Assembly (NCBI GenBank): GCA_009103225.1
Contig: RHPI01003020.1
Coordinates: 81,525 to 145,524 of the forward strand
Length of the DNA: 64,000 nt
Reading direction: 5' to 3'
DNA from: Chlorokybus atmophyticus
Lineage: Eukaryota > Plantae > Mesostigma and Chlorokybus algae
The first letter of the stretch is position 1; each line of letters begins with the position of its first letter. Positions 1,162-63,630 of this stretch are shown here, piece by piece. A program made the translations under genes and the position numbers. Below the pieces are notes generated by a model. It was not told the origin of the DNA and ran no database searches. It was given only the letters and a program-made list of their open reading frames with translations.

Positions 1162-2585
1162 TTAAAACTTGTTTGTAGAGAACACCTTGTCCTTCACAGC
1201 AACTCGGGCCCCTTGGTTGGCCTTCAACTTCTTGCCCTTGTCTCTGTGATGCTCTTGATGCACGTGCTCCTTGCTAACCTTCACTTGCTGCACCTTGCTC
1301 GCCAGCGCTTCCTTGTAGCTCTTTGCAGCTCCCACGGGCTCCGAGCTCCTTGTGACAGCAACCTTCTGTACCTCCTCCTTGTTGCCATGGCCTTGAGGTG
1401 TCTTAAACGCTGTCCTCTCGACCACCCTTGTCTTTGCAACAACCTTATGCGCACCGTCCTCCTCCACATAGTAGAGTCCACCCCTGTTAATGCCTACTAC
1501 ATGCGTGACACCGCCAAGCTCTATACGAGCCTTGTCCGCATTAAACACAGCCCTTGCACCAACTATCGTGGCTCTACGTATTGAGAACAAACTAGCATAT
1601 GCACGTGGCACATACAGTACAACCCTAAGCACAACCTCTTTCACCATACAACCAACCTTGCACCTCACATTGGCATCTCCCTTTGCAACAGCTTCCAGCA
1701 TCTGCCGGTTCCCAAAATCCACCGTAACTGGCTCAGGTAAATGAGTGAGGTTGGTGAGCTTGCTCCTGTCGCTCGTAAGGTGTCTGTTTGCTCTCGTATG
1801 TAGCACCCACCCAAGATACTCCGCTCCCTCATCCGATGCATGGAAAGCAACTGCTCGCTGCTCACCATCAGCCTTCTTCAACTTGGGACACTTCATCTTG
1901 ATGTGACCACGTTCCCCGCAATGCCAACACTCCACGTTGCTGCTTCGTGTGCCCTTCTTCACATGCCTCGATGAAGTCGCGAAGGCCACAGCACCTCCAG
2001 GTGCTCCCTCACCAACATCGTCCTCCTTCCTCAAGCGCTGCTCTTCTTAAAGAAGCATTGGTGTCACCCCATCCATTGACAAGTCCTCCTTCCCAGACTC
2101 CAAGATAGTGACAACAACCCTGTACTCTTTAGGCAAACCTGAGAGCACAGCCCACACCACCTTAACTTCCTTGAGCTCGTGGCCAACACCCAGCAAGTCC
2201 CTCCACAACGCTTTCGCTCACGCCATGAACTTGACAATGGGCTCCCCGCTCTCCTTGCGCAATGAGTTGAGCTCCTGCCTCAGCTGCAGTCTCCTCGCCA
2301 TGTTGCGCGACATGAAGTGGCTATCCAACTTCATCCAAAGCATTATGCTCCTGTGCACTCTTGCACTCCTTCACCAGCACTAGGTGATGATCAGCCATGT
2401 GCAAGCCTATAAAAGATAAAGCTTTTCTCCCTTGTGTTGCTAGACACTCGCTTCGCCTACAGGGCCTCCGCTGGATCCACATACTTCCACAGCTCCTTGT
2501 GGGCCAATAGTAGCTCCATCTTCACGCTCCAAATGTTGTAGTTATCAACGTCCAGTGGTTCAATTGTGAACTTCAAGCCGTCCAT
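1162..2585 (-). pseudogene. gag-protease pseudogene of element A with a K/V/E/Q-rich non-integrase tail
   Basis: ATG at 2585, then in-frame stop and frameshifts in gag. ORF 1162-2034 carries a CCHC knuckle and the copia protease region, then a tail containing EPVGAAKSYKEAL. Confidence 0.8.
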
Positions 2586-2699
2586 GCTTGTGGCCGTGGT
2601 TGCCCCTCTGCTACTTGCAGACCTTACAACCTACTCCACACCAAGCAACTACAGCTACTCACACAATCGTAACACACTCTATCAACCTACACAAGCATG

Positions 2700-2712
2700 T
2701 GGGCCCATAACC
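2700..2712 (-). promoter_or_regulatory. Primer-binding site GGTTATGGGCCCA (internal half-tRNA-iMet type)
   Basis: Directly abuts the 5' LTR end on the minus strand; same motif as the Drosophila copia PBS, which pairs with an internal part of tRNA-iMet. Confidence 0.85.
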
Positions 2713-3128
2713 TGTTGACATACACACGTGCAAGTGACACGCCAACAACATCGACACAAGAGCATGACTGCTACTGCCATTAATGCCATACAAGTCCAGG
2801 GGTTTTATACCCCGCCAGTTTCTACACACGTCTACATTTGCAAGCACCGCGTGCACAATACTCAGCCTTTTAACGCGCTCTAAGTTGCACTGTTTAGCTT
2901 ACGATCGGAACTTTTTAACAAGCTAAGCCACGCCTGCTAAGCTTACGTATTCACAAAGCTACGCGGTTTCTCCCAACGCTCTACTCAGCATCTGGTCCGG
3001 AGTCCGTCCTGGCTCGACCATCTTGCTAAGTCCGGAGTCCACGTGCTCAGCCCATACCTTCGACTCTCGACTCTTGTGTGGAGGGCAAGCTGACCGGATA
3101 CAAGCATCACCCATGTGATACCTTCAAC
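2713..3128 (-). repeat. 5' LTR of copia element A
   Basis: Plus strand reads tgttgacatacacacgtg...gataccttcaaca; TGTTG/CAACA termini. Confidence 0.9.
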
Positions 3129-4565
3129 AACTCCACCATTCAGCTTGAAGACATATCCAGTGGTTGACCTTTTGGTATCCAGGTCACCAGCATAATCTGC
3201 ATCACAATAGCCTTGCAACTCCTGATTGCCCCGCCCATACTGGATGCCAACTGTTGCTGTCCTTGACAAGTAGCGCAGTACTCCTTTTGCTGCCAACCAA
3301 TGCTGCATTGTTGGAGCAGACATGTACCTTGCCAATTGTCCCACAGCATGTGCAATATCAAGCCGAGACGCTTTGGACAGGTAGAGAAGGCTCCCCACAA
3401 GCTTGCAGTAGGGATACTTTGCGTTGTTCAGCTCTTCATCACTGTCCAGTGCTCTCACCAACTGAACTCCCACGCTCAGTGGCACCTCTCTGACAATCGT
3501 GTTGTCAAGATCAAACTTTGTCACCAGCTGCTTCACCGCTTGCTCTTGCAAAATGGTGATGGTTCCAGCAGCTCTGTCTCTAGTGACAACCATACTCAAG
3601 AAGTATGTTGTCTCTCCCCAAATCTCTGCACTCAAACACAGCCTGTAGCTGAGTCTTCACTCGCTGCACCCCTGACATTCTTGACGCTGCAATTAGAATG
3701 TCGTCCACGTAAACCAACAACCACACTTGCTTGCTCTCGTCGCAAAACAAGCTTTGATCTACCAAACGTGCAGTAAACCCCTGCTTCTGGAGCTCCTTGC
3801 ACAGTCTTGCATGCCACACCCGTGGTGCCTGCTCAAGCCATGCAATGCCTTTACCAATCCGCATGCTGTACCAGGTGGCCCCTCCTGATACCCTCTTGAT
3901 TCCTGAATGTAGATTCTCTCTTCCAGCTCCCCATACAGAAACGCTGACTTGACATCCAAGTGATGGAACTCCAGGTTGTCTGCTGACACAACTGCCATCA
4001 CAGCTCTGAAGGCTGCCAACTTCCCCGCCGGTGCAAACACCTTATTAAAGTCAACTCCTTCTTGCTGCAGAAAAAACCCTTTGGCAACCAATCTGGCCTT
4101 GTACCTTTCAATATTACCATTGCCGTCCCTCTTCACCTTGAACACCCACTTAACAGGAATAGGCTTGACCCCGGCAAGTGGAACTTCAATTTTCCATGTT
4201 GCGTTGGCATGCAGCGAGGCTATCTCTTCATCCATTGCCTGACGCCAATTGTCTGCATTAATACTCAGGAGTGCTTCTTCATATGTCGCTGGCTCCACAT
4301 TCTATGAGTCTGAGCCCGCCATAGCCAAACTCCTTATAAAAACGAACAGGACCCTTCATGTCGCGCCCAGGTTAATGCCCCCTTTGCTGTTGGTTTTGCT
4401 CCTGCTGATGACTCCTCTCATCTTTGCGCAGCGCTGCTCACTTTTGTAGGGCTGAGCTCCCTTTTTGAATCAGAATCACTGTCCACCAAATATGGAACAG
4501 TCGTTGCTGTGCTGAACTCAGGCTGTTGTTGATCATCATCAGTGCATTCGTCTTTTGATAAATCG
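3129..4565 (-). mobile_element. Ty1/copia pol fragment (element C): integrase-RT linker, RT and start of RNase H, frameshifted
   Basis: Motifs EPATYEEAL, KWVFKVK, YKARLVAKGF, DVKSAFLYGELEE, LLVYVDDILI, GYCDADYAGDLDTKRSTTGYVF. Cut at KLNGGV by the LTR at 3128. Confidence 0.9.
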
Positions 4566-4829: not shown

Positions 4830-7800
4830 CTCCCACGCAAGCAGCTTGACCTCCAACGCTTGCTCCTGTAGTCAATCACAGATGCCAAGTCCTGCGCAAC
4901 AAGTCTTGAACTTGAGCAGTGACAATGGCTTTGTCATCAAGTCCGCCAGCATGCCCTCGGTGTTGCAATACTGGAACTCCACGTCCTTCCTTGTGACTCA
5001 GTCACGCACAAAGTGATGCATAACATCAATGTGCTTCGTCCTTGCTGAGGCAATAGGGTGCTTCAACAACTTGATGGCTCCTTGGTTGTCACAATAGATG
5101 ACGAAGCACGCCATGGGTGCTCCAAGTTTGCCATGAGTTTGCAAAGCCAGAGTGCCTCCTTCACTGCTGCTGCCGCTGCCATGTACTCAGCCTCTGATGT
5201 AGATGCTGCTATTGTTGGCTGCAGCCTGCTGTTCCAGCTCACCACGCCTCCCTTCAGCTTGAAGACGTAGCCTGTAGTGGACCTTTTGCTGTTAAGGTCA
5301 CCAGCAAAGTCCGAGTCGCAGTAGCCCTCAAACTCAGTGCTCCCGCTCTCAAACTTGATGCCAACTGTTGCACTCCCAGCAACATAGCGTAGTACTCCTT
5401 TTGCTGTTCTCCAGTGCTCCATGCTCGGTGCAGACATGTAGCGAGCAAGTACTCCCACATCATGTGCAACATCGGGACGTGTGCACAGTGCCAGATAGAG
5501 CATGCTGCCTACCAGCTCACCATATGGATATTGAGCCTTGTCGAGTACCTCCTCATCTTGATGAGGGCAGTGCCAAGTGTGAACGGTGTGGTCTTGGTCT
5601 TCGCTTCAGTGAGCCCAAAGTTGGTGACGAGTCTTCTCACCATCTGCTCCAAACTGATCTTAATTATGCGTGCAGCCCTGTCGCGCTCAATCACCATGCC
5701 AAGGAACACTTCGCCTCTCCAACATCACGAACTGAGAATGCTTGCTGTAGAGCAAGTTTCGTCTCCTGCAGGTGGTGCACCTGCCTGGCGGTAATGATGA
5801 TGATATCATCAACATACACGAGCAGCCAGACCTTGTTGTCTGCATGGATGAAGAGCCCAGGGTCTGCAGAGGATGCGGTGAAGCCAAGTGCCTCCAGCTC
5901 CTTGGTGAGCTTGATGTGCCACATACGCGGTGCCTGTCGCAACCCGTACAGAGCCTTGATCAGCTTGCACGCTGTGCCTCTCTCCCCTTCTTCATATCCA
6001 GGTGGTTGCAAGATGAAAATCTCCTCCTCCAGCTCTCCGTAGAGGAAGGCAGTCTTCACATCCAGGTAATGCAGCTCTAGGTCTTCAGCAGCAACCATAG
6101 CTAGCAGTGCACGAAAGGTGGTATGCTTACTTGCAGGTGCAAACACTTCGTTGAAGTCCACACCTTCCTGCTGCAGGAAGCCCTTTGCCACCATTCCTGC
6201 CTTGTAGCGCTCAATGTTGCCCTGACCATCACGCTTCACCTTGAAGACCCATTTCACTGGAATGGTCTTCACTCCTTGCGGTAACTGCTCCAGTGACCAA
6301 GTGTTGTTGGCATGGAGTGACGCAATCTCCTCGTCGATAGCACGCTGCTGTTGAAGGTATTACATGGGTGATGCTTGTATCCGGTCAGCTTGCCCTTCAT
6401 ATAGGAGTCGAGGGTCGAAGGTACCATGAAGAAGCGCGTGGACTCCAGACTTAGCAAGACGGTCGAGTCATGACGGACTCCGGACCAGGCTGCTTGGTAG
6501 AGCCTTGGGAGAAATTGCGTAGCTTCGTGGATACGTAAGCTTAGCAGGCGTGGCTTAGCTTGTTAGAAAGCTCTTGTTATAAGCAAGGCAGCTTAGCTTA
6601 CAGAACAGCAATCGGCTGAGTATAGCGCACGCGGTGCTTGCCAATGTAGACGTGTGTAGAGATTGGCGGGGTATAAAGCCCAAACTTGTTGCAATGAAGA
6701 TAAGAGGTCACGATGTAGCATGTGTGCGGATGCTATGGCGGCAGTAGCAGTCATGCTCTTGTGTTGATGTTGTTGGCGTGTCACTTGCACGTGTGTATGT
6801 CAACAGCTGCCATTGCTCCGCATCTAGTGCTAACAATGCCTCCTCATAGGTGCTTGGCTCCTCATTGTGCACACTGGCGACGTGTGCCTTGTGTAAGAAG
6901 TCATGTGCCTTTCTCTCCCTCATTGGGTATCTCCAAGCTGCGTGCTCCTGCTGCAGGTGCGACTGCTTGTCTGCTACAGTAGAGTCCTGCTTACCCTTAT
7001 CGTCGATGATGGCCTTGCCTGCAACTCCCCCTTTCGTAGGAAGTTCCTCCGGCTGTGCTTCATCTTCATCTCGAGGAAAGAAGCCTGCTTCTGGTTGTGA
7101 TAATCCCTTGTGGAAAACCACCTCCCTGCTCACGATGATTTTAAGAGTCTCTTCGAGCAAGATTCTGTAAGCCTTGGGACCCGGTTCATAGCCAACAAAG
7201 ATGCCCTTCTTGATGACCGGCTCCAGCCTGTGCCTGAGCTGTTTAGGCACTAGTGCATATGGCGTGCATCCAAACACACGCATACCACTTACATCTGGTG
7301 TGGCTCCATAGAAGTGCTCCCACGGAGTCTTCTGCTCTGAGCTTACCGGAGACCAATTGCGGATGTAGTTGGCAGTGAGTACCGCCTCCTTCCACATTTT
7401 GTCTTCCATCTTGGTGTCATTGAGCATGGCTCGAACACGCTCCAAAAGTGTCCTGTTGAGGCGTTCAGCTGCTCCATTCTGCTGCGGGGTGTAGGGTGCC
7501 GTTGTTTCGTGGCGTATGCCCTTGCTGGCAAAGAACTCCTTCAACTCCTTGTTGATGTACTCCCCTCCTCGATCACTCCTCATTGCCTTCACCTTGTTAC
7601 CAGACTGGGTCTCCAATAAGGCCACAACTGTGCGCACAGCTCCAGCAACTTCAAACTTCAGTGTCAGCGGAAAGATGACGGATAGCTTGCTGCAGTCGTC
7701 AAGGAATGTAGCAAAGTACGTGACCCCTCCCTTCGCCACAATGCGCATAGGGCCACAGACATCCATGTGCACAAGCTCGTAAGGATGCTGACTGCTTGAA

Positions 7801-9245
7801 GAGGATGGTGGGAATGGCATAGCATGCTGCTTTGCAACCAGGCATGGTTCACAAAATGCACCTGATGCATTCTTGAGTTCTTCTGTGCTGAGATGGATGC
7901 CCTTGACCATCTTCTCAACGACAAGGCGAGTGAGGTTGACGTAGCTGAGATGCCCGAACCTTCGATGCCACAATGTTGGCGACTCCTTGTCCTTCACCAC
8001 CATAGCTTGAATGTCAATGTTCTTAGGGTGCTGCTCCACGTGGTAGAGCCCTCCCGGATCAGTGATACCAACCATGTGCACGACCCCATCAAGGATGCCT
8101 ATGCAGCCACCTTTTCGAAATAGGATCTCCGCGCCTAAGCGCTCCGCAACCCTCACAGAGAATAGACTCGCAATAGCCTTGGGAACATGCAGGACGTTGC
8201 GTAACAACACCTCGCGTAGTGTGTTACCAACCTTGCACTGGAGTCGTACATTGCCAACTCCCTCAGCCACCAGTACTTCGCCACCGAAGCCCGCCACCTT
8301 GATTGTGGACGTCAGCTTCCTGTAGCCCTCCATCACCTCCTGGTTTGGTGTGAGATGACGATTGCAGCCAGAGTCCACCACCCAGAAAGCTGTGCTCGCC
8401 CTCGAACTGGATGCAGTAAAGGCGACATGTTTCTCCTTGTGTTGGTGCTCGTCGCCGCTGTTGCTGGTGCTTGCTCTAGGTTGCCCCAGTTGTTTCTTCC
8501 TACAGTCCTTCACAATGTGCCCCTTCCAACCACACCAGTGGCATGTGAGGTCGTTGTGACGAGGATTGCCTGGCTTGTTGCCCTTGTAGTTCTCTTCATG
8601 GTTGCTCTTCTTTGCGTGCTTGCCGTTGTAGAAGGCGACGGCATCCGCTTGCTCATCCTTCTTCACAACCCTCTGCTCCACGGTGAGCAGGTTTGGTAGC
8701 ACATTGTCCAATGTCAACTCCAATGATGACGTCTCCAGCAGGGTTGCGACGACCTCGTACTCTGCTGGTAGCCCTGCAACAATGGCCAGCACTACCTCCG
8801 TCTCCCCCATATTATGGCCGACGTTGATGAGGTCCGCCCACACCTCTCTCGCGCGTGCAACATACTTCGTGATGGGTTTTGCTGCCTCCTTCCTGAGTGC
8901 GCTGAGCTGCTTGCGTAGATGCAACTTTCTGGCATTGTTCTTGGCTCTGGAAAGGCTGATAGCTTTTCCCAAGCTTGTTTACCATCTTCACATGCAGTAA
9001 GCATGGGAAAGTGATGCGGTTTGCAATTCAACACAAGCAAAGAGTGTGCTTCCGAATGCTTTAACCACACAGTATGAATGCTCTAACCACACAGTATTCG
9101 CTCCTGGTGTTGGTGGTGGTGCCTTTGGATCAACGTACTTTCACACCATTTTGTGGATGAGCAAGGCCTTCATCTCCACGCACCATGTGTTGTAGTTGTC
9201 GGTGTCCAGCTTTGCAATCTGCCCCCTGTCGTAGGTCGCCTCCAT
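4830..9245 (-). pseudogene. gag-pol pseudogene of element B
   Basis: MEATYDRGQIAKLDTDNYNTW (gag), CHWCGWKGHIVKDC, WVVDSGCNRHLT (PR), LWHRRFGHLS, HMDVCGP, RSDRGGEY and NGAAERLNRTL (INT), LLVYVDDIII (RT), GYCDSDFAGD and STSEAEYMA (RH); several frameshifts. Confidence 0.9.
6349..6805 (+). mobile_element. Solo LTR of the element-A family inserted in element B pol, with 5-bp TSD GCTGC
   Basis: TGTTG...CAACA, reverse complement of the element-A LTR with a ~40-bp extra block. GCTGC at 6344-6348 and 6806-6810. Removing it restores EQWQRAIDEEIASLHANNTW. Confidence 0.92.
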
Positions 9246-16363: not shown

Positions 16364-18006
16364 TTATGCCTGCAGCAGTTGCGCGATCTTGGACTCGGAC
16401 AATTTTGGGCTATCTTTGTTGCGCTCCACCACATTGCCATCCTAAAGCACATGAGAACAACAACTCAACAAGATACGAAGAGCAACAAGTCATTGGCAAC
16501 ATCAGGACCGCAATTCGTACCTTGTCAATGATGAACTTGGCGGCAAAGTTCCAACGCACGTCTCCTGAACACGTCTCGCAAGCGCCCTTCAGGTACTTGT
16601 ACACCTCCGAGGTCTTCGGCCCGTTCACATCAACCTGGGTGCAACGACACATCACCAAGAGAAGCTTATTCAGGATGTCACAAGTTGTCATGCGCAACAC
16701 GCTGGATTGGTAATTGCCTTTCGCACCTTGTCCATAAGTAGAAACTGTGCGCCATACTTGGAGGCAAACTTCTTGATGTCCTCACCACTTCCGGGCTCCT
16801 ATTTGGACAGTATATTCACTTGTGCATGTATACGGGGCATACATCAACCTGCCAGATCCTTGCGTGTATGAAGTGTGATCAACTTGTAAGTGTGGGGGTG
16901 CATGTGGGTGTTTGTGCATACATTCGTAGATGCGTGCACACAGACACGCTCACGCACTCATGTGCACGCAATGTCATTGTGTGCGCGGGTATCAAGTGTA
17001 ACCCCATGCGCATGCTCGTGAGCAAGAGCGCATATCTGTGCATGCATATGTGGTTGTAGGTAATGAAGACAACTGATGTTGATTTTGCAACAGATGTACA
17101 TAATGGTAGGAGTGAATGTAACATCCTCTTTGTCGCCTAACGACACCAATGCAGGTAACAGGCACAATACCTGTCCGCCAAACTGATTGCAGGGAAAAGC
17201 CACAATCTCAAGGCCCTTGTCTGCATACTTCTTGTGCAACTCCACCAGCTCCTGCGTGTCCACATACATGCTAATGAGCCCATTTTGCCAGTGTGCAGCG
17301 GACAGCATATGCGTCACAAGAACAGTTGGGTACACAGACCAACTGGACCACGTCGAGAACAACTGGACCCTTACCGTGTAGTTTGAGTTCGTGAAGCCAC
17401 ACCTGAGAGAACAAGCAACCACGCAATGAAAATTAGAACAGTTAGTCATTGTGGTAACCACAGTGCATGCATACTTGCTGCGGTCAATGTGACTTACTGG
17501 CTTGCGACGTTGGTCACGAGCACAACCTGCGCAACCACATATAATCAATGCAAGAAAACGCCAACGTATTGACAATATTTGCTGATGAGGACAGCGTCTT
17601 TAGACATGCATGCTTAGCAACTTTTACGTTATCAACTACTAGGCACAATGGGATGAGGGTTGTACTAGAGGATTGTCATAGTTGAGTTTTAGCTGCACGG
17701 AAAACCCTGTAACGCTTGGCTCATCACCTTGACTGTGCATCCACATGTAAGTTACACATGCGCTTCAGGTTGAAGTCAAACCCTAACCCTAACCCTTACC
17801 TTCCCCTTGAACCTCTGCTCGAAGTCCACCTCCTTCCCATCAATGTCCTTGGCTTTGAGCGCATGGAACCCCGCAGCCATGGCGACGGTGAAACCTCTCC
17901 GGCCGGGCCTACCTCCCACCCTTACACCGGCGGCAAGTCGCCGCGGCAGAGGTGCCCGGGTACCCAAGAATAAGGAGGACGATGACAAGGACGTCGCCAA
18001 CGCCAT
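16364..18006 (-). CDS. GPX: Plastid-targeted Cys-type glutathione/thioredoxin peroxidase, 7 exons, 202 aa
   Basis: Exons 18006-17800, 17526-17498, 17402-17375, 17251-17171, 16798-16727, 16634-16521, 16441-16364, all GT-AG and in phase. Motifs [29 protein letters not shown]; Ser/Arg-rich transit peptide [15 protein letters not shown]. Confidence 0.95.
17778..17798. promoter_or_regulatory. Telo-box / short telomere-like repeat (AAACCCTAACCCTAACCCTTA) at the start of GPX intron 1
   Basis: Contains the AAACCCTAA telo-box and three CCCTAA-like units. Confidence 0.5.
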
Positions 18007-42396: not shown

Positions 42397-45300
42397 TCAC
42401 AAGAGGACCTCTGGAGGCACTCGTTTTCGGAGCCGCAAAGCTCGCCTGCACGCCGACATCGGCCGCATGGTTCCAAATATATCATATGACATTTTGAGCA
42501 TCTCATCGCTAGCGGACACAAGCCGCTTTATCTCCCTCGCATTCTTGTGGAGCACCGCCGCAATTATGTACAGGTGCAGCCCCACTCCCTTGACAGGCTC
42601 GTCCACGCAGAGCTGCGGGTTGTCCAGGACTCGATGTATGTACTCCTTTCGCCGCTGCATATGACCCTGGCGAGAACACACACTGTTTTCAGTAACAGCC
42701 GCAATCTGCAACATGCAAAGAATGCGTGTTGCAATGTGTGTCCAATGCGTGCCGTGCCAGCAGATGCAACACATAAATAGCAGACATGCAGCGGCCTGTT
42801 ACTGAAGATTGTACTCTGAATTCACTGAATGTGCGCACACAGCAGTGAACACATGTGTGATTGTGTCATAACCAACAGTTGTAAACGACAACATTGGTAA
42901 GCAACAACGTGACATGTTTGCTCTGGACTGCACTTTTCCTACAAGAGACTTGAAATACGCAAAACCCAAACAGAGTGTGCATACACAGAGTAGCCTGTAA
43001 CGCAGCAAATCGGATGTAACATATTGCTAATGAAGTAGCATACCTCTTGCCATCCAGTAACGGCCCCTGCAGCATCATTGCGAGCCTGCTGTACAGCTCT
43101 GGCAGCGTAAGTCGGGTAGTCCTTTGCCCAAATTGTTTCCCACAGCAGCATCGCGCGATCAAAGGACAGCTCTCTGCGGAACAACACTAGCACCATACGG
43201 AAAGCAAAGAGCGCATCACCGGAGTCCACCTCATCTAGATGGCGCCTCAAGGATGGGTCGCGTATTGCCTGTGAACAAGACAGTTGAGTTGATGATAGAA
43301 CAACAGTTGCAAGTGTGTTCCTAGCTGATACAATGACCCATACAGAGATGGGGGTGACTGGGTGCAGCTGGCTATACCCTGAGTTGACTACTGACTCGTT
43401 GACATTGCCCAAAGACGGGTCATGAGTTGCAATGAGCTATCACTCATGTTTCCTACTTTAGAAGGATGGGGTGATTGGGTGTTTTGCTGGCTATGGCTTG
43501 GGTTGTGAAGATATCAAAGGCTCATGTATTCTTAACAACTAACCAAAATTTGCATGGCTAGCGCCAGCTCATTGTGGACGCCCATTGGTCCACCCCGGCT
43601 GTCTGCAGCCAGTAGAAAGTTGGCCCGTAACCGCTGCATCAGGTGATGGAACACCCAGAATGCGTCCGCGTCTGATGAGTACAATATCACGAAAGGCGAA
43701 AGAAGGTCGCTCATGCCCTGCAGTCCAACACAAACAAAACTGTCAGCATGAACACTAGCACACATACTATACAGCGGGCAATCTGAATGATGGAGAGTGT
43801 GTCAACTTCGTGCTCTGGTGAGAACTCGGTATGGTTCAACAACAACCAGAGGTCTTGTTGTTTTGTATATCAACTTGTATCCTAATGCAGAATTGATACA
43901 ATTTCATGTTACATACTGCCTGTTAACGCATGTTGAACAGAATGTGACACACAGAAGTGTCGGTAAGCCAAGGGCGATTGTCCTTGCCCGAAAACAACTC
44001 ACTTGGCAGTAACCTGTTGGATGGTCAATCCAGGCATAAGTGGATAGAATCCTTTGCATGCGATACAGGTTGTCGTTCCTGGCCCCTTCGTAGAAAGTCA
44101 TGTTCCGGTCCGTGCGCACAACATCCAGCTCAATCAAGCGCTGCAACAACACTTCCAACATCAACAAAATGAACCCTTGTGAGGAATCAAAGCAACACAG
44201 AATACACACACTGTTGTTGAGTCCCATACCCAGTGCTATGCAATGCTGATGCATACACACCTGTGTGTCGCGCCAGTTCTCGGGCATGCGAGGATCAACC
44301 GGTTGGGTGGTGGGTGATTCAGCTGCGCCGTTGACATGTGCTCCTTGTGCACCCGCTCGTGCTATGCTGATGTCAGTGGCAGAGGTGCTTGCAGAGAGCA
44401 TCTGTTGGGCTTGAGCACTTGGCTGTGGTGAAGATGGCACATACTCGTCTCGTATTGTCTCGTTGTCAATCTTGTTGGAATGGCGAGGCTCAGAGCTGGA
44501 GTGCGGGGTCCCATTGTGAATGCCGTTGTGCTCAACGACGGCTATGTTGTGCTCTTGGTCCAACTCGGCGTGAAGCCCGCTTGCCAGGGGCGACATGGCC
44601 ACCAGCTGGCTGCTCGCATGCTGCCATTGCTGCAGCAGCTGCGTGTAAAGCTCTGCTCTTAGCTCTCGCAACGCCTGACGCTCTGCTGCTGTGCTGTCGG
44701 GCGCAAAGCAACCCAGCAGAAACTCCCACACCTGCAAAACAGAGACAATGTGCCGTTCAAAAATGATATGTTAAGCTATCCCAACCCTTGCTTTGCCTTG
44801 GATACTGCAATGTGAGTGCTACGCTATCAAACAGCCTTGATGCAAAATCATGCACACATTGGATTTATTGTGAAGATGAACAATGACAAAATTTGTAAGC
44901 ACAATACCATGTTGCCACTACCACATTGGTACACATGTGCAACATACAATGTCACATTGCCTGGGAATGCCCGTTGTGCTCCCATCCAAGGAATGGACAG
45001 CGCAGCAGCGTGGTGAATGACATGTATCAGTTGCGGCGACGCACGACGGAAAGCAACGTTCCCCAAACCATACAAGCTCCTAGGGTGATGTGCAGCAACT
45101 GCGGACCAACAAAAGCTGCACATCCGCCCTTGTGACAATATTGCTATGCGATACAGGGCTATTGTCGACAAGCACAATGAGTGATTAGACACACCTATGC
45201 TGCATTTTGCAGATAAGACAGCATTGCTTTAAGCGCAATGATTTGCTATAGTTACGGCATATTTGCTGAACATTTAACACATAAGGAAAATAGGAACTTG

Positions 45301-59389: not shown

Positions 59390-59923
59390 GACGCCGTCTG
59401 GGATGGCTGTAGGAATGAAGCAGTCGGCGCATAGGAATATCATAAGACAAGACCTTGATGTTGCTTAGTTGCTGCCTGCCTGCCTGCCTGTGTGACACAC
59501 GCACACTGTCGTGCAGATCTTGTAGTGTGAGACCTCATGCTTTGCATGACACCATTACCCAACCATTGCTGTTGCTTCAAACGATCGCGTGACACAACCA
59601 CAGCTACCGCAATGACACGCTACTTGCGCAGTTCGCAAGCAGTTGCGAACTTGCCATGTGCCTAGTTGCAAACAGCCATGCATGCCACCAACCTGCAAAT
59701 TAAAAGGACAGGATGTATGCACAACATAGTGCTCAACTGCAAACTAAACAAAGTTGATGCGGCTCAAGGGCACTACAACTACCAAGCTCACCCTACTAGG
59801 GAAGAATGGACAAAGGGACACTGCGTCTCGCAGAAACGTATCAAGTATTTCAGTTGAAGCTCTGCACACCTACGCTGCAAATTGGTATCTGTTCTCAAGT
59901 GTCTACATTCTCAGTTGTCTAGT

Positions 59924-62920
59924 CTACACTTGGTGGTCAGCACCACCCGGCCTTCGCCCGCGATGCAGGTACTTGTCTACACCTGTCTTGCCTGAAGTCA
60001 TCTGCACCTGCGAAGCACTCGATGCAGGCGTCCCACCAGGCCGAGTGACCCAATTGCCCTGCACAATGCCACGTTACTTGGTCACACAACCTTCACAATA
60101 CTTCATTTGCAACAGCCAGACACAGACACACTCTCACATTCTCATCTTGGAACTGGACGCTTTCCATCGAGTCCATCGGCACAAACTTGCTCGCGGACGC
60201 CAGGCGCCTATCGTGGTATTTGATGAAGCCCAACAGTGCCACGATCTCAATCAACTCGAGGAAGCTTATGGCCGAAGCGCCCAGGAAGAGGCCGCTGAGA
60301 CCGCCGATGTTGGCGATGAGAGCCCCGACCGTGACCGCAGCGGACTCGTTGAACTGAGTCAGGGTGAGGTCCGAGAAGTAGAAGTTGACGACGATCAGGT
60401 TCTCGTGCATGAACTCGAGCACCTCGTCGTACAGGGTCGCGTTGCTGAGGATATCATCCGTGTCGAATCCGAGCGTGAGGGAAGGCCAGCGCAGCAGCAT
60501 AGATGGAACGGACGCCTTTGATGGCATTTGCACTGTTGTGACTTCACCATGCACAAAGCGAGATTGGCAGAACCTGGAAGTACAGTTATTGTTAGAGACT
60601 TTGAAAAGCCAAACTGCTGCGACACACAAGAGCGAACGGCTATTGCATGACCAATTGTGCTTACGTGGTGAGAGTCAAGTTGAAGCAGTCCTGCAAGCAG
60701 CCGATGTCATCAGGTGCAACAGTATTGAGAAAGTCTGCTCGGTTGAACTTCTCCAGCTCAAAAGTGTCGTACGCTTCGAAACCAGCGCACTGAATCGCAC
60801 AGTCCAATGCTGCTGTCTTCGGAAGGTACGTGTCTCCTTTGCTCAAGTCAATGCACTTATCCCCTATGACAAACAGCACATGAAGCGTCAGACTTGCTCG
60901 GAAGCGCTAATGCAACCAATATGTTGCTGATGATCTTGGCAACTGACTCACCATAAGGTGGGCCAAGGTGGTTCTGCTCGGAAGCGCTAAGCTCTACATT
61001 CGACCACACTCCAGGCTGCAGAAGCTGTTGCACATAGCCAAGCGTGTATAATCAGCAACTGCCAGTGTTTGTTGGTTGAGGAAATAGAGTGAAACATATT
61101 AGACACATTGTTCGCGTGTATGCGTTTTGTGCGCATCCCACCATCCCCCCCCCCCCCCCCCCCCCNNNNNNNNNNNNNNNNNNNNNNNNNNNNNNNNNNN
61201 NNNNNNNNNNNNNNNNNNNNNNNNNNNNNNNNNNNNNNNNNNNNNNNNNNNNNNNNNNNNNNNNNNNNNNNNNNNNNNNNNNNNNNNNNNNNNNNNNNNN
61301 NNNNNNNNNNNNNNNNNNNNNNNNNNNNNNNNNNNNNNNNNNCACATCCCTATTAGCCCGCGTGCAGACACATGCACGCACGCGCGACATACCACTCTGT
61401 TATCCGGATTGATATGCTGCGTGGCCTCCTGGTTTGTTAGCAGACCATGATGATGCAGCTCGAAGGCGATGCCTGCGCCCCATGTTCGCGGGCAATAATC
61501 GTCCTGCACACAGCACAGCATCAGATACAAGCAACTGCAGGCGCCTGATTCTAGCAGATGCAAGGTATGCGTATCCAAACCGTGCAGGCATGTACAAGTG
61601 CATTGACAAAAGTAAGCAATGCTTGCACCTGCCCAACCAAGAGCCCGAGAGACAGTCCACCATCCGGGCCCTCCAGATAAGTATTCGCACTACCATAAAT
61701 GTCTGCCAGCGTGCGGCACATTAGCTGGGGCGTTAGCATAAGCACTGCAGCAACAACACCACGACAAAACTCACTGAAAGTGTAGGCAACGCCGTATCGC
61801 TGATTGGGAAATGGTGTTATTGAAGTGTAGAAATCGCTTGCAGAGCAATTCCGCCCTTGAAACGTGCATCCTATCAACATCGAGTCCAGCTGATGCGCAG
61901 AAGATAGAATCTGCACACACAACCGTGTGTTATGATTGATTTGCTTAATTGAGGCATCACCGATGCAGCTCAATTGTAAGTGTTACCTGTGACTCAGTCC
62001 AGTTAAGAGGATACCGCTGAAACCCACCACTCGCATCGCCAAACACGCCAGCTTCTGTGCTGCACATCTGACTAAAGTCAACAGTGTTCTCGACCGCAGA
62101 CCTCCTGACCTGCATGCCCAAACAAGTCTAAGTCCCACGCATGAACATCATGTGCTTCGTAGTGTCCACACGCACGCACGCACGCACGCACGCACCGGGT
62201 TCTGGTTCCAGATTGTGATTGAGGGAAACGCCAGGCCTGCGCCATAAGACTTGTCGATGAGTGCAACATTGGTGTTTGTATTTCGGTCGCTAAACTCGCT
62301 GATCTGCACGATAGCCAGCCAGAGGAAGATGGCCAGCCCGATGAGAAATATTGTGAACCAGATCAGCCTTCTCCGCAGACTGGTGTCGACACGCATGGCT
62401 CGCGGTATGGCTGCAAAGCAGAGGGTTCACATAATCATGTATGGCTTCATGGTGCACTGCCCGCAACAATTGGCATGATGCATGGCTGCGTGACAACAAG
62501 CACGCAGCTTTGCATCATGCTTAACACCAGGCAGGAAACGTAGCAAATGTAGCAAATTCTGTGACAAGCTTGCAAGAGCTTGTGCAGGGTGAAACGTGAA
62601 CATGCACAACGCACAGATGTAACATAGGTTATTGCAGAGACTGTGGGCCACATCCACACAGCAATGTTACCATGCAGGGTGAAGTCGCCACACAGCTCAT
62701 CGGCACGAGGGTCAAAGAGCCAGCTGGGTGTGCCTTTGTGAGCGCCTGCCTGCACGAGGGGCTTGACATCCGCCTCTTTGTCTGGCGGGGGGACCATGTC
62801 TGGAGCATCCAATATGGGTTGTGATGAAGAGGATTTCATGCTAGCGCCGCGGCGGAAAGAACGCTTTGAAGGCGAGTCCACGTCGCTTGACTGCACCACA
62901 ATGACGCCATGCTCCTCCAT
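59924..62920 (-). CDS. DEG/ENaC/ASIC-family (amiloride-sensitive-type) ion channel, 10 exons, 580 aa
   Basis: Exons 62920-62671, 62410-62196, 62109-61987, 61910-61775, 61702-61629, 61503-61393, 61015-60952, 60863-60665, 60573-60138, 60058-59924; all GT-AG, in phase, no internal stop. TM1 LIWFTIFLIGLAIFLWLAIV, FPSITIWNQNPVRRS, HQLDSMLIGCTFQGRNCSASDF, YGVAYTFN, LGPPYGDKC, TM2 ALIANIGGLSGLFLGASAISFLELIE. Confidence 0.92.
61166..61342. other. Assembly gap after poly-C, inside a channel-gene intron
   Basis: 177 N; the flanking exons join in frame. Confidence 1.
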
Positions 62921-63630
62921 CCTGCGCATGCATACAAGCTTAACACAATCGGATCAGCCCACGGTCTGGTTGGACGCACAGACACAGCGTTGTGAACACC
63001 ACATACCACACTTTCAAGTGCATGCGCAATGAGGTTGTGAGCGCAATCAGAGTGTCAAGCACAAGCTTTCAAGGGCTTGAGTGCTTGCTTTTGTCCCAAC
63101 TGGCAGCCGAACCACGTGAAACCGTCTGGCACACACTTTGCACGACACTGCGTACAGTGTTGGACACTTGGCCATTGTAAGCGAGAGAGAGAAGTAAGAA
63201 ACCAGAGTGTCCGCCATCAAAAATCAACGACGTGCAAACTAAATAGTGTGACTGTCTGCTCTGCGCTGCTGTGGGTGATCAGCACTGCGCGGTGATCTGT
63301 CAGCCACTGCTCCAGCGCAAGCGGCTGCTTGGGCAGGAGCAATATCAACAGACCGTCTCGCGACGCACAAGCAACAGTACATGCAAGCTGCACCAGACCA
63401 CACCAGGTCAGACCAGGCCACCGACAGCTACAGTACCTGGCAGCCGGTGTTGCAGCAGCGCCGGCCCGGCCTAGGCAGGCCAACAAGTGACGACCAACTC
63501 GCCTCCGCTGCCACTCCTTCTACTTCATCAACACAGCAGGCTCAGCAACCTGCTCGCTAACAGCGCGGGCGACGCTGCCGCGTCCACGGCGGCGGCGACA
63601 GCGGTGGCGACGCCGGCGGTATGCTTGGTC

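Follow-up and report, generated by a model that had tools for sequence, protein, structure and literature searches.

The minus strand of the 64-kb window (64,000 nucleotides of Chlorokybus atmophyticus DNA, the whole stretch analysed here) carries, between positions 62920 and 59924, what is very probably a genuine nuclear gene of this streptophyte alga encoding a 583-aa subunit of the DEG/ENaC superfamily. The gene is intact and is transcribed, and its introns, of GT-AG type, are spliced out. DEG/ENaC channels are treated as animal proteins in reviews and surveys, and Chlorokybus belongs to the earliest-diverging streptophyte clade; a known family is thus met in an unexpected lineage. The novelty lies in the recognition and not in the sequence, as JGI and EukProt already provide the gene model publicly, together with its Pfam label. 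In this respect, an HMMER search with exon 9 recovered the EukProt protein P0001 (Chlorokybus atmophyticus jgi/Chlat1 Chrsp290S04339), to which the 583-aa model is identical, letter for letter. A full-text literature search found no paper linking DEG/ENaC to Chlorokybus, any green alga or the plant lineage. The algal family is small, with at least three paralogues. Chrsp290S04328 (P0152; 600 aa, 60% identity over the full length) shares the scaffold of Chrsp290S04339 as judged by gene name, Chrsp110S08634 (P0002; 612 aa, 45% identity over the full length) is on another scaffold by the same criterion, and neither of the two lies within the 64-kb window. The three proteins have a common architecture, a paired loss of cysteines (see below) and a C-terminal DKY..RR motif.

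Splicing of the gene, predicted from the genomic letters, is confirmed by transcripts from two independent studies. Contigs of four public runs were mapped onto positions 59700-63100. RNA run X1 (2021) gave a 1935-nt contig and run X2 (2013) a 2019-nt contig, each with zero mismatches. Eight of the nine coding joints are seen directly in these contigs, with ends reading CT..AC on the plus strand and hence GT..AG in the direction of the gene. At 62110/62196, beside an (ACGC)n repeat, the ninth joint is supported by contig-letter accounting. Both contigs connect 61393 to 61024 and omit 368 nt, including the assembly gap (N run 61166-61342). Since the contig letters between the flanking pieces correspond exactly to exons 5-9, the gap hides no exon and the frame is continuous; the alignment of the three algal paralogues also has no indel at the exon 6/7 junction. 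The break in the assembly is attributed to the adjoining poly-C run with its very high word depth. The words of exon 9 are complete in X1 and X2. Another RNA run, labelled as the same organism, contains 28% of them, which is taken to reflect a copy in another strain that differs by a few per cent.

Three-frame translation and inspection of the splice sites gave ten coding exons, read from 62920 to 59924, and one 5' leader exon, all on the minus strand. All ten coding exons are bounded by GT..AG, and 62920 and 59924 are the exact ends of the start and stop codons. The coding sum is 1752 nt, equal to 583 aa plus TAG. The preliminary description was right about the two end points, the ten in-phase exons and an intact frame, and slightly short in giving the protein 580 aa. 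The 3' end of the non-coding leader exon (5' UTR) is placed at 63437-63468, as loose ends of the X1 and X2 contigs at 62924 match 63440-63468; the leader intron (62922-63436, 515 nt, GT..AG) was deduced from this match together with the splice-site letters. In the genomic leader an in-frame stop occurs 28 codons upstream of the ATG, without any further ATG in the interval, and the start is therefore set at 62920. Coding exon 1 (62671-62920) contains the ATG and the disordered, presumably cytosolic N-terminus and ends in FTLHA, the Ala being split across the intron. Coding exon 2 (62196-62410) contains TM1 (about 62286-62378) and the post-TM1 motif FPSITIWNQNP, as judged by Pfam ASC, hydropathy, and the RNA joint 62410/62671. 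Coding exon 3 (61987-62109), delimited by RNA contig pieces and splice sites, encodes the short finger region. Coding exon 4 (61775-61910) encodes the beta-ball with CTFQGRNCSASDF and YGVAYTF, based on Pfam ASC and the RNA joints 61910/61987 and 61702/61775. The latter joint skips 72 nt and fixes the acceptor of coding exon 5 (61629-61702) at 61702; an acceptor at 61744, in frame but leaving a 30-nt intron, is ruled out by it. Coding exon 6 (61393-61503) is supported by the RNA joints 61502/61628 and 61024/61393, and is followed by intron 6 (61025-61392), which holds the N run next to poly-C and is skipped whole by the RNA contigs. Coding exon 7 (60952-61024), with GPPYG at its C-terminal end, and coding exon 8 (60665-60863), which encodes a reduced thumb with Cys 331, 349, 353, 383 and 387, are both defined by RNA and splice sites. 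Coding exon 9 (60138-60573) encodes Cys 396, the palm strands, TM2 (about 60216-60329) with the G-A-S filter (60273-60281), and E500 and E503, as assigned by Pfam ASC, the ASIC1 alignment, and RNA joints. Coding exon 10 (59924-60058) encodes the predicted cytosolic C-terminus with the DKY..RR motif and the stop TAG (59926-59924); it is supported by the RNA joint 60057/60137 and the paralogue alignment. Reading exon 9 through to a stop at 60093 is ruled out by the same joint. The 3' UTR extends below 59700, as contig X2 reaches this position and beyond.

The sequence profile, the two-TM topology and the predicted fold solidly place the protein in the DEG/ENaC family, as had been proposed from its motifs. 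The whole protein matches Pfam ASC (PF00858) with 142 bits against a cut-off of 23.6 (E 3.9e-41), and exons 2, 4, and 9 each match the profile in colinear order (positions 14-77, E 7.1e-9; 144-182, E 0.0089; 370-454, E 1.4e-15). The best PDB sequence matches are chicken and human ASIC1, followed by FaNaC, ASIC2, ENaC alpha/beta/gamma, ASIC5, and pickpocket; those to ASIC1, FaNaC, and ENaC span TM1, the ectodomain, and TM2. Hydropathy revealed exactly two hydrophobic segments (residues about 95-125 and 472-513), in agreement with the two TMs initially described, and AlphaFold2 places helices at residues 95-125 and 476-523. Two TM helices around a large extracellular domain would leave both termini cytosolic. 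The AlphaFold2 model, computed from a 39-sequence alignment, is of moderate confidence (pLDDT 71.5, pTM 0.61), with pLDDT below 50 at residues 1-62. Foldseek against PDB matched this model to ASIC1a, FaNaC, and ASIC5 (E 1e-21 to 1e-24, probability 1.00, 440-500 aligned columns); every one of the best 50 matches is an ASIC or FaNaC chain (E about 1e-24, TM by target about 0.6). Among the matches listed from AlphaFold DB clusters, names are of DEG/ENaC type or lacking, except for five fused or otherwise-named entries.

It is very improbable that the scaffold represents contaminating animal or protist DNA in the algal assembly, a view already taken in the preliminary description. Such an origin would fit a family that is elsewhere almost entirely animal, and Pfam scans of 30 neighbouring ORFs identified no green-lineage-specific neighbour genes beyond generic eukaryotic ones; the plastid-protein neighbours earlier cited against contamination did not appear in these scans. 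All that the scans found elsewhere in the window were a RabGAP-TBC gene, one exon of a glutathione peroxidase, and fragments of Ty1/copia. On the other side, the genome paper reports axenic, monitored cultures without any sign of contamination, and channels are unmentioned in it (PMC7027972). The same mismatch-free spliced transcript is present in the 2013 and 2021 runs under one organism label, with a diverged copy as the reading for the third run. Nine coding introns interrupt the gene, and the three paralogues are distributed over two scaffolds, judged by gene names. Identity to animal or metagenome sequences stays at or below about 27% (at most 25% for outside relatives in the full-length comparison). 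The coding sequence has a GC of 0.55 and a GC3 of 0.64, similar to neighbouring coding sequence.

The motifs FPSITIWNQNP, CTFQGRNCSASDF, GLFLGASAISFLE, and PPYGDKC are present. The post-TM1, beta-ball and GAS motifs listed at the outset are thereby upheld, whereas the PPYGxC of that list is PPYGDKC, with two residues before the Cys. In the ASIC1 alignment the algal stretch NIGGLSGLFLGASAISFLELIE pairs with a 22-residue stretch of ASIC1, G492-A493-S494 is aligned to the GAS belt, and E500 and E503 are aligned to 'LELFDY'. The pore-lining TM2 is the best-conserved part of the protein, with G484, G485, G492, S494, and E500 invariant across 39 family members. The Glu and the Asp/Glu lower in TM2 are also kept; in ASIC these residues help to set Na+ selectivity. 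The residue preceding 'NIGG' is Ala481, at the degenerin site, where a small residue is required. The pre-TM1 HG motif, known from ENaC and ASIC to contribute to the lower pore wall and to be important in gating, is absent: FTLHA is found here and in P0152, whereas P0002 has FSMHG and keeps HG, but with GMS in place of GAS. A Trp (W151) occupies the family Cys position in FPSITIWN, and an Ala (A237) that in YGVAYTF; in ASIC1 the Cys of 'YGKCYTFN' is the disulfide partner of the FPxxTxCN Cys. This paired loss is found in all three algal paralogues and is absent from the nearest outside proteins, P0153 and P0129, which appears to indicate adaptation and not decay. The beta-ball pair C211/C218 is retained, as are six thumb-region cysteines after PPYG; the finger region is short and the thumb reduced.

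Among solved structures ASIC1 (PDB 2QTS, 6VTK, 9E4E) is matched best, in sequence (E 7.5e-20) as well as in fold (E about 1e-24), at about 21% identity. Both proteins carry the CxFxGxxC pair in the beta-ball and a palm motif of PPxG type; both have two TM helices, the GAS belt, and acidic residues at the 'LELFDY' positions. The algal protein differs in carrying HA for HG, in the replacement of the post-TM1/beta-ball disulfide partners (W151, A237), in an Asn for the pore-mouth Asp of 'GDIGG', and in a shorter finger. Its thumb has six Cys, whereas that of ASIC1 has ten. ENaC alpha/beta/gamma (PDB 6WTH, 6BQN) belong to the same superfamily, with TM2 and palm matching at E 1e-11 to 1e-13. Residues 514-583 contain no PPxY, unlike the C-terminus of ENaC, and the ENaC-type finger insertion, known as the GRIP domain, seems to be missing, the finger region looking too short for it. 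As in ENaC, three diverged paralogues could, speculatively, form heteromers.

The subunits would assemble as trimers in the plasma membrane, possibly mixed with the paralogues, and such a trimer would form a voltage-independent cation pore preferring Na+. The Na+ preference is suggested by the retained G-A-S belt, the small Ala481, and the two acidic residues lower in TM2. In ASIC and FaNaC the finger and thumb build the ligand and proton pockets. Because the finger is short and the thumb is down to six Cys, a leak is favored over gating by protons or peptides: the channel may well be a constitutive leak, or one modulated mechanically or osmotically, while proton or peptide gating is a possible but less probable mode. 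Against a conducting pore as the main reading stand the HG-to-HA change, seen in this protein and one paralogue, the loss of one conserved disulfide, and the reduced thumb. The same three features would suit a protein that kept the fold and does not conduct alone, whether receptor-like or serving as a subunit that is silent or modulatory, and the split of features between P0002 (HG/GMS) and the present protein (HA/GAS) recalls obligate heteromers. This is nevertheless unlikely, as TM2 is the best-conserved part with its five residues invariant in 39 members, the gene is transcribed, and the disulfide cysteines were lost as a pair, which looks like adaptation. A conducting Na+-preferring channel is the preferred reading.

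Relatives of the gene are scarce. The HMMER search with exon 9 covered 1.84 billion representatives, and only five proteins reached E 1e-10; two are algal and the others are fused models from beetle, snail, and jellyfish. A full-length word-index search returned the three algal proteins, one metagenome protein at 25% identity, and nothing else, and word-index searches with a 10-sequence alignment or with the TM2 region alone likewise gave only algal proteins and one metagenome protein; an exact look-up of the protein among assemblies yielded no entry. No other Viridiplantae protein was present among 25 source-checked matches or in the word-index searches, and no prokaryotic homologue in 185,579 bacterial and archaeal species genomes. 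JGI metagenome relatives have 22-27% identity over longer matches and are mostly single exons of animal-like genes. The mostly animal distribution with scattered protists that was assumed at the start agrees with Elkhatib et al. 2023, who ran BLAST on NCBI Chloroplastida among other groups, listed no candidates beyond holozoans, a single alveolate, and a single stramenopile, and weighed loss against transfer (PMC10507113). The absence from land plants, likewise assumed, is stated by a PF00858-based plant-channel survey in which Chlorokybus was not included (PMC12806904). The homologues of Tunicaraptor, heterokonts (Cafeteria), and dinoflagellates are likewise non-metazoan and equally patchy, but belong to other supergroups, none of them Archaeplastida (PMC10507113 and its reference 28).

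Trees were computed from 39 and 41 sequences; they lack an outgroup and contain long branches, and a taxon is missing for most of the metagenomic rows. The three algal proteins form a clade of their own (100/100) with a long stem; it lies outside the sampled ASIC/BASIC-like group and hence not in the ASIC clade. A 99/95 split separates the algal trio and all labelled animal sequences from a 27-row metagenomic clade of unlabelled taxon. In an AU test of whether the alga nests inside the animals, animals as a clade excluding it were not rejected (lnL difference 0.54, p 0.31). Phylogeny, proposed earlier as a check, thus confirms the algal clade and does not separate retention from transfer. An intron position in common with animals was also considered and rejected: at many animal-like loci CNQSPYR is followed by an intron, but its site is 5 nt downstream from that of algal intron 2.

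A recent arrival is ruled out by the 45% paralogue identity, the nine introns, and the shared derived features. The divergence of the paralogues (60% and 45%) with their common paired Cys loss argues for long residence and selection, and the family is a long-standing resident of the Chlorokybus lineage, whether inherited or acquired long ago. Acquisition by an old horizontal transfer, with an animal, a holozoan or some other protist as donor and with later gain of host introns and duplication, is a substantial possibility. It is favored by the very patchy distribution of the family, with non-animal reports only from Tunicaraptor, heterokonts, and dinoflagellates (PMC10507113), by the lack of another Viridiplantae protein in the matches and searches described above, and by the 99/95 split that groups the algal trio with all labelled animals. 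However, the best outside identity is about 25%, the paralogues have diverged to 45%, and the AU test does not reject an animal clade excluding the alga. The nearest animal-type intron is 5 nt off and not at the same position, and the tree that carries the split has long branches, no outgroup and mostly unlabelled metagenomic rows. A more far-reaching proposal, which we regard as rather doubtful, holds that DEG/ENaC predates the split of the plant and animal supergroups, that Chlorokybus is a rare archaeplastid retainer, and that the three paralogues might form an ENaC-like heterotrimeric Na+ channel sensing mechanical or osmotic load in a wall-less stage or in desiccation-prone cells.

An intact, expressed, multi-copy set extends the DEG/ENaC family to the plant lineage, and it bears on the question of an origin before animals versus a spread by gene transfer. 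The protein, in which the finger is short, the thumb has three disulfides, another conserved disulfide is lost, and HA replaces HG, is a minimal natural variant for structure-function work. For plant biology it is a candidate for a Na+ or mechanosensory channel of a kind that has no known counterpart in plants.

The neighbourhood of the DEG/ENaC (Pfam ASC) channel gene of C. atmophyticus contains minus-strand retrotransposon pieces of Ty1/copia type, recognised by their Pfam domains (gag, Pol beta-barrel, integrase, RVT_2 and SH3-like) at window positions 1165-4298 and 6711-8972 and including one uninterrupted ORF of 754 aa. In a Pfam scan of 30 neighbouring ORFs, the only non-transposon matches were to exons of a glutathione peroxidase gene (16961-17575) and of a RabGAP-TBC gene (42942-44737), both on the minus strand. 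Within the channel gene, a poly-C run (61137-61165) adjoins the assembly gap, and intron 2 carries a microsatellite of (ACGC)n units (62162-62201). Because both are of low complexity, read mapping was skipped or inflated at these two places, and word depth over the poly-C run was very high in all sequencing runs. Run X4 is a DNA run filed under a different organism code; its low-depth contigs agree with the gene, with zero mismatches, over three segments (59803-60047, 61665-61820 and 62202-62365). The source of this run may be the same alga, listed by a different species name.

In many animal-like DEG/ENaC exons (loci L010-L082, on JGI metagenome contigs) the coding sequence ends in the motif CNQ[SN]P[YF]R, and gt comes directly after it. 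These exon ends point to an intron widely shared among animal-like DEG/ENaC loci and located 5 nt downstream of algal intron 2.

Family protein P0153 and the product of an intronless ASC gene of 537 aa (locus L002, 10001-11614) on a 4.2-Mb ENA metagenome contig form a supported pair (100/96), which ranks with the closest relatives that the algal proteins have outside their own group. A hAT transposase adjoins the ASC gene at this locus. Weak structural neighbours (TM 0.3-0.45) of the AlphaFold2 model of the algal protein in the ESM Atlas include the PAC/TMEM206 chloride channel as well as unnamed clusters, mostly of Streptophyta or Mucoromycota. Such similarity may be due to chance or may reflect a remote relationship of two-TM folds.

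Twenty-seven ASC-family proteins, about 440-510 aa long and known from metagenome or run assemblies alone, form a well-supported clade (99/95); among them are P0010, P0017, P0028, P0031, P0036, P0045, P0063, P0108 and the protein of locus L001. Their composition is rich in Asn, Lys and Ile, and their genes are apparently without introns. The clade may represent a large lineage of the ASC family outside animals that has gone unrecognised.
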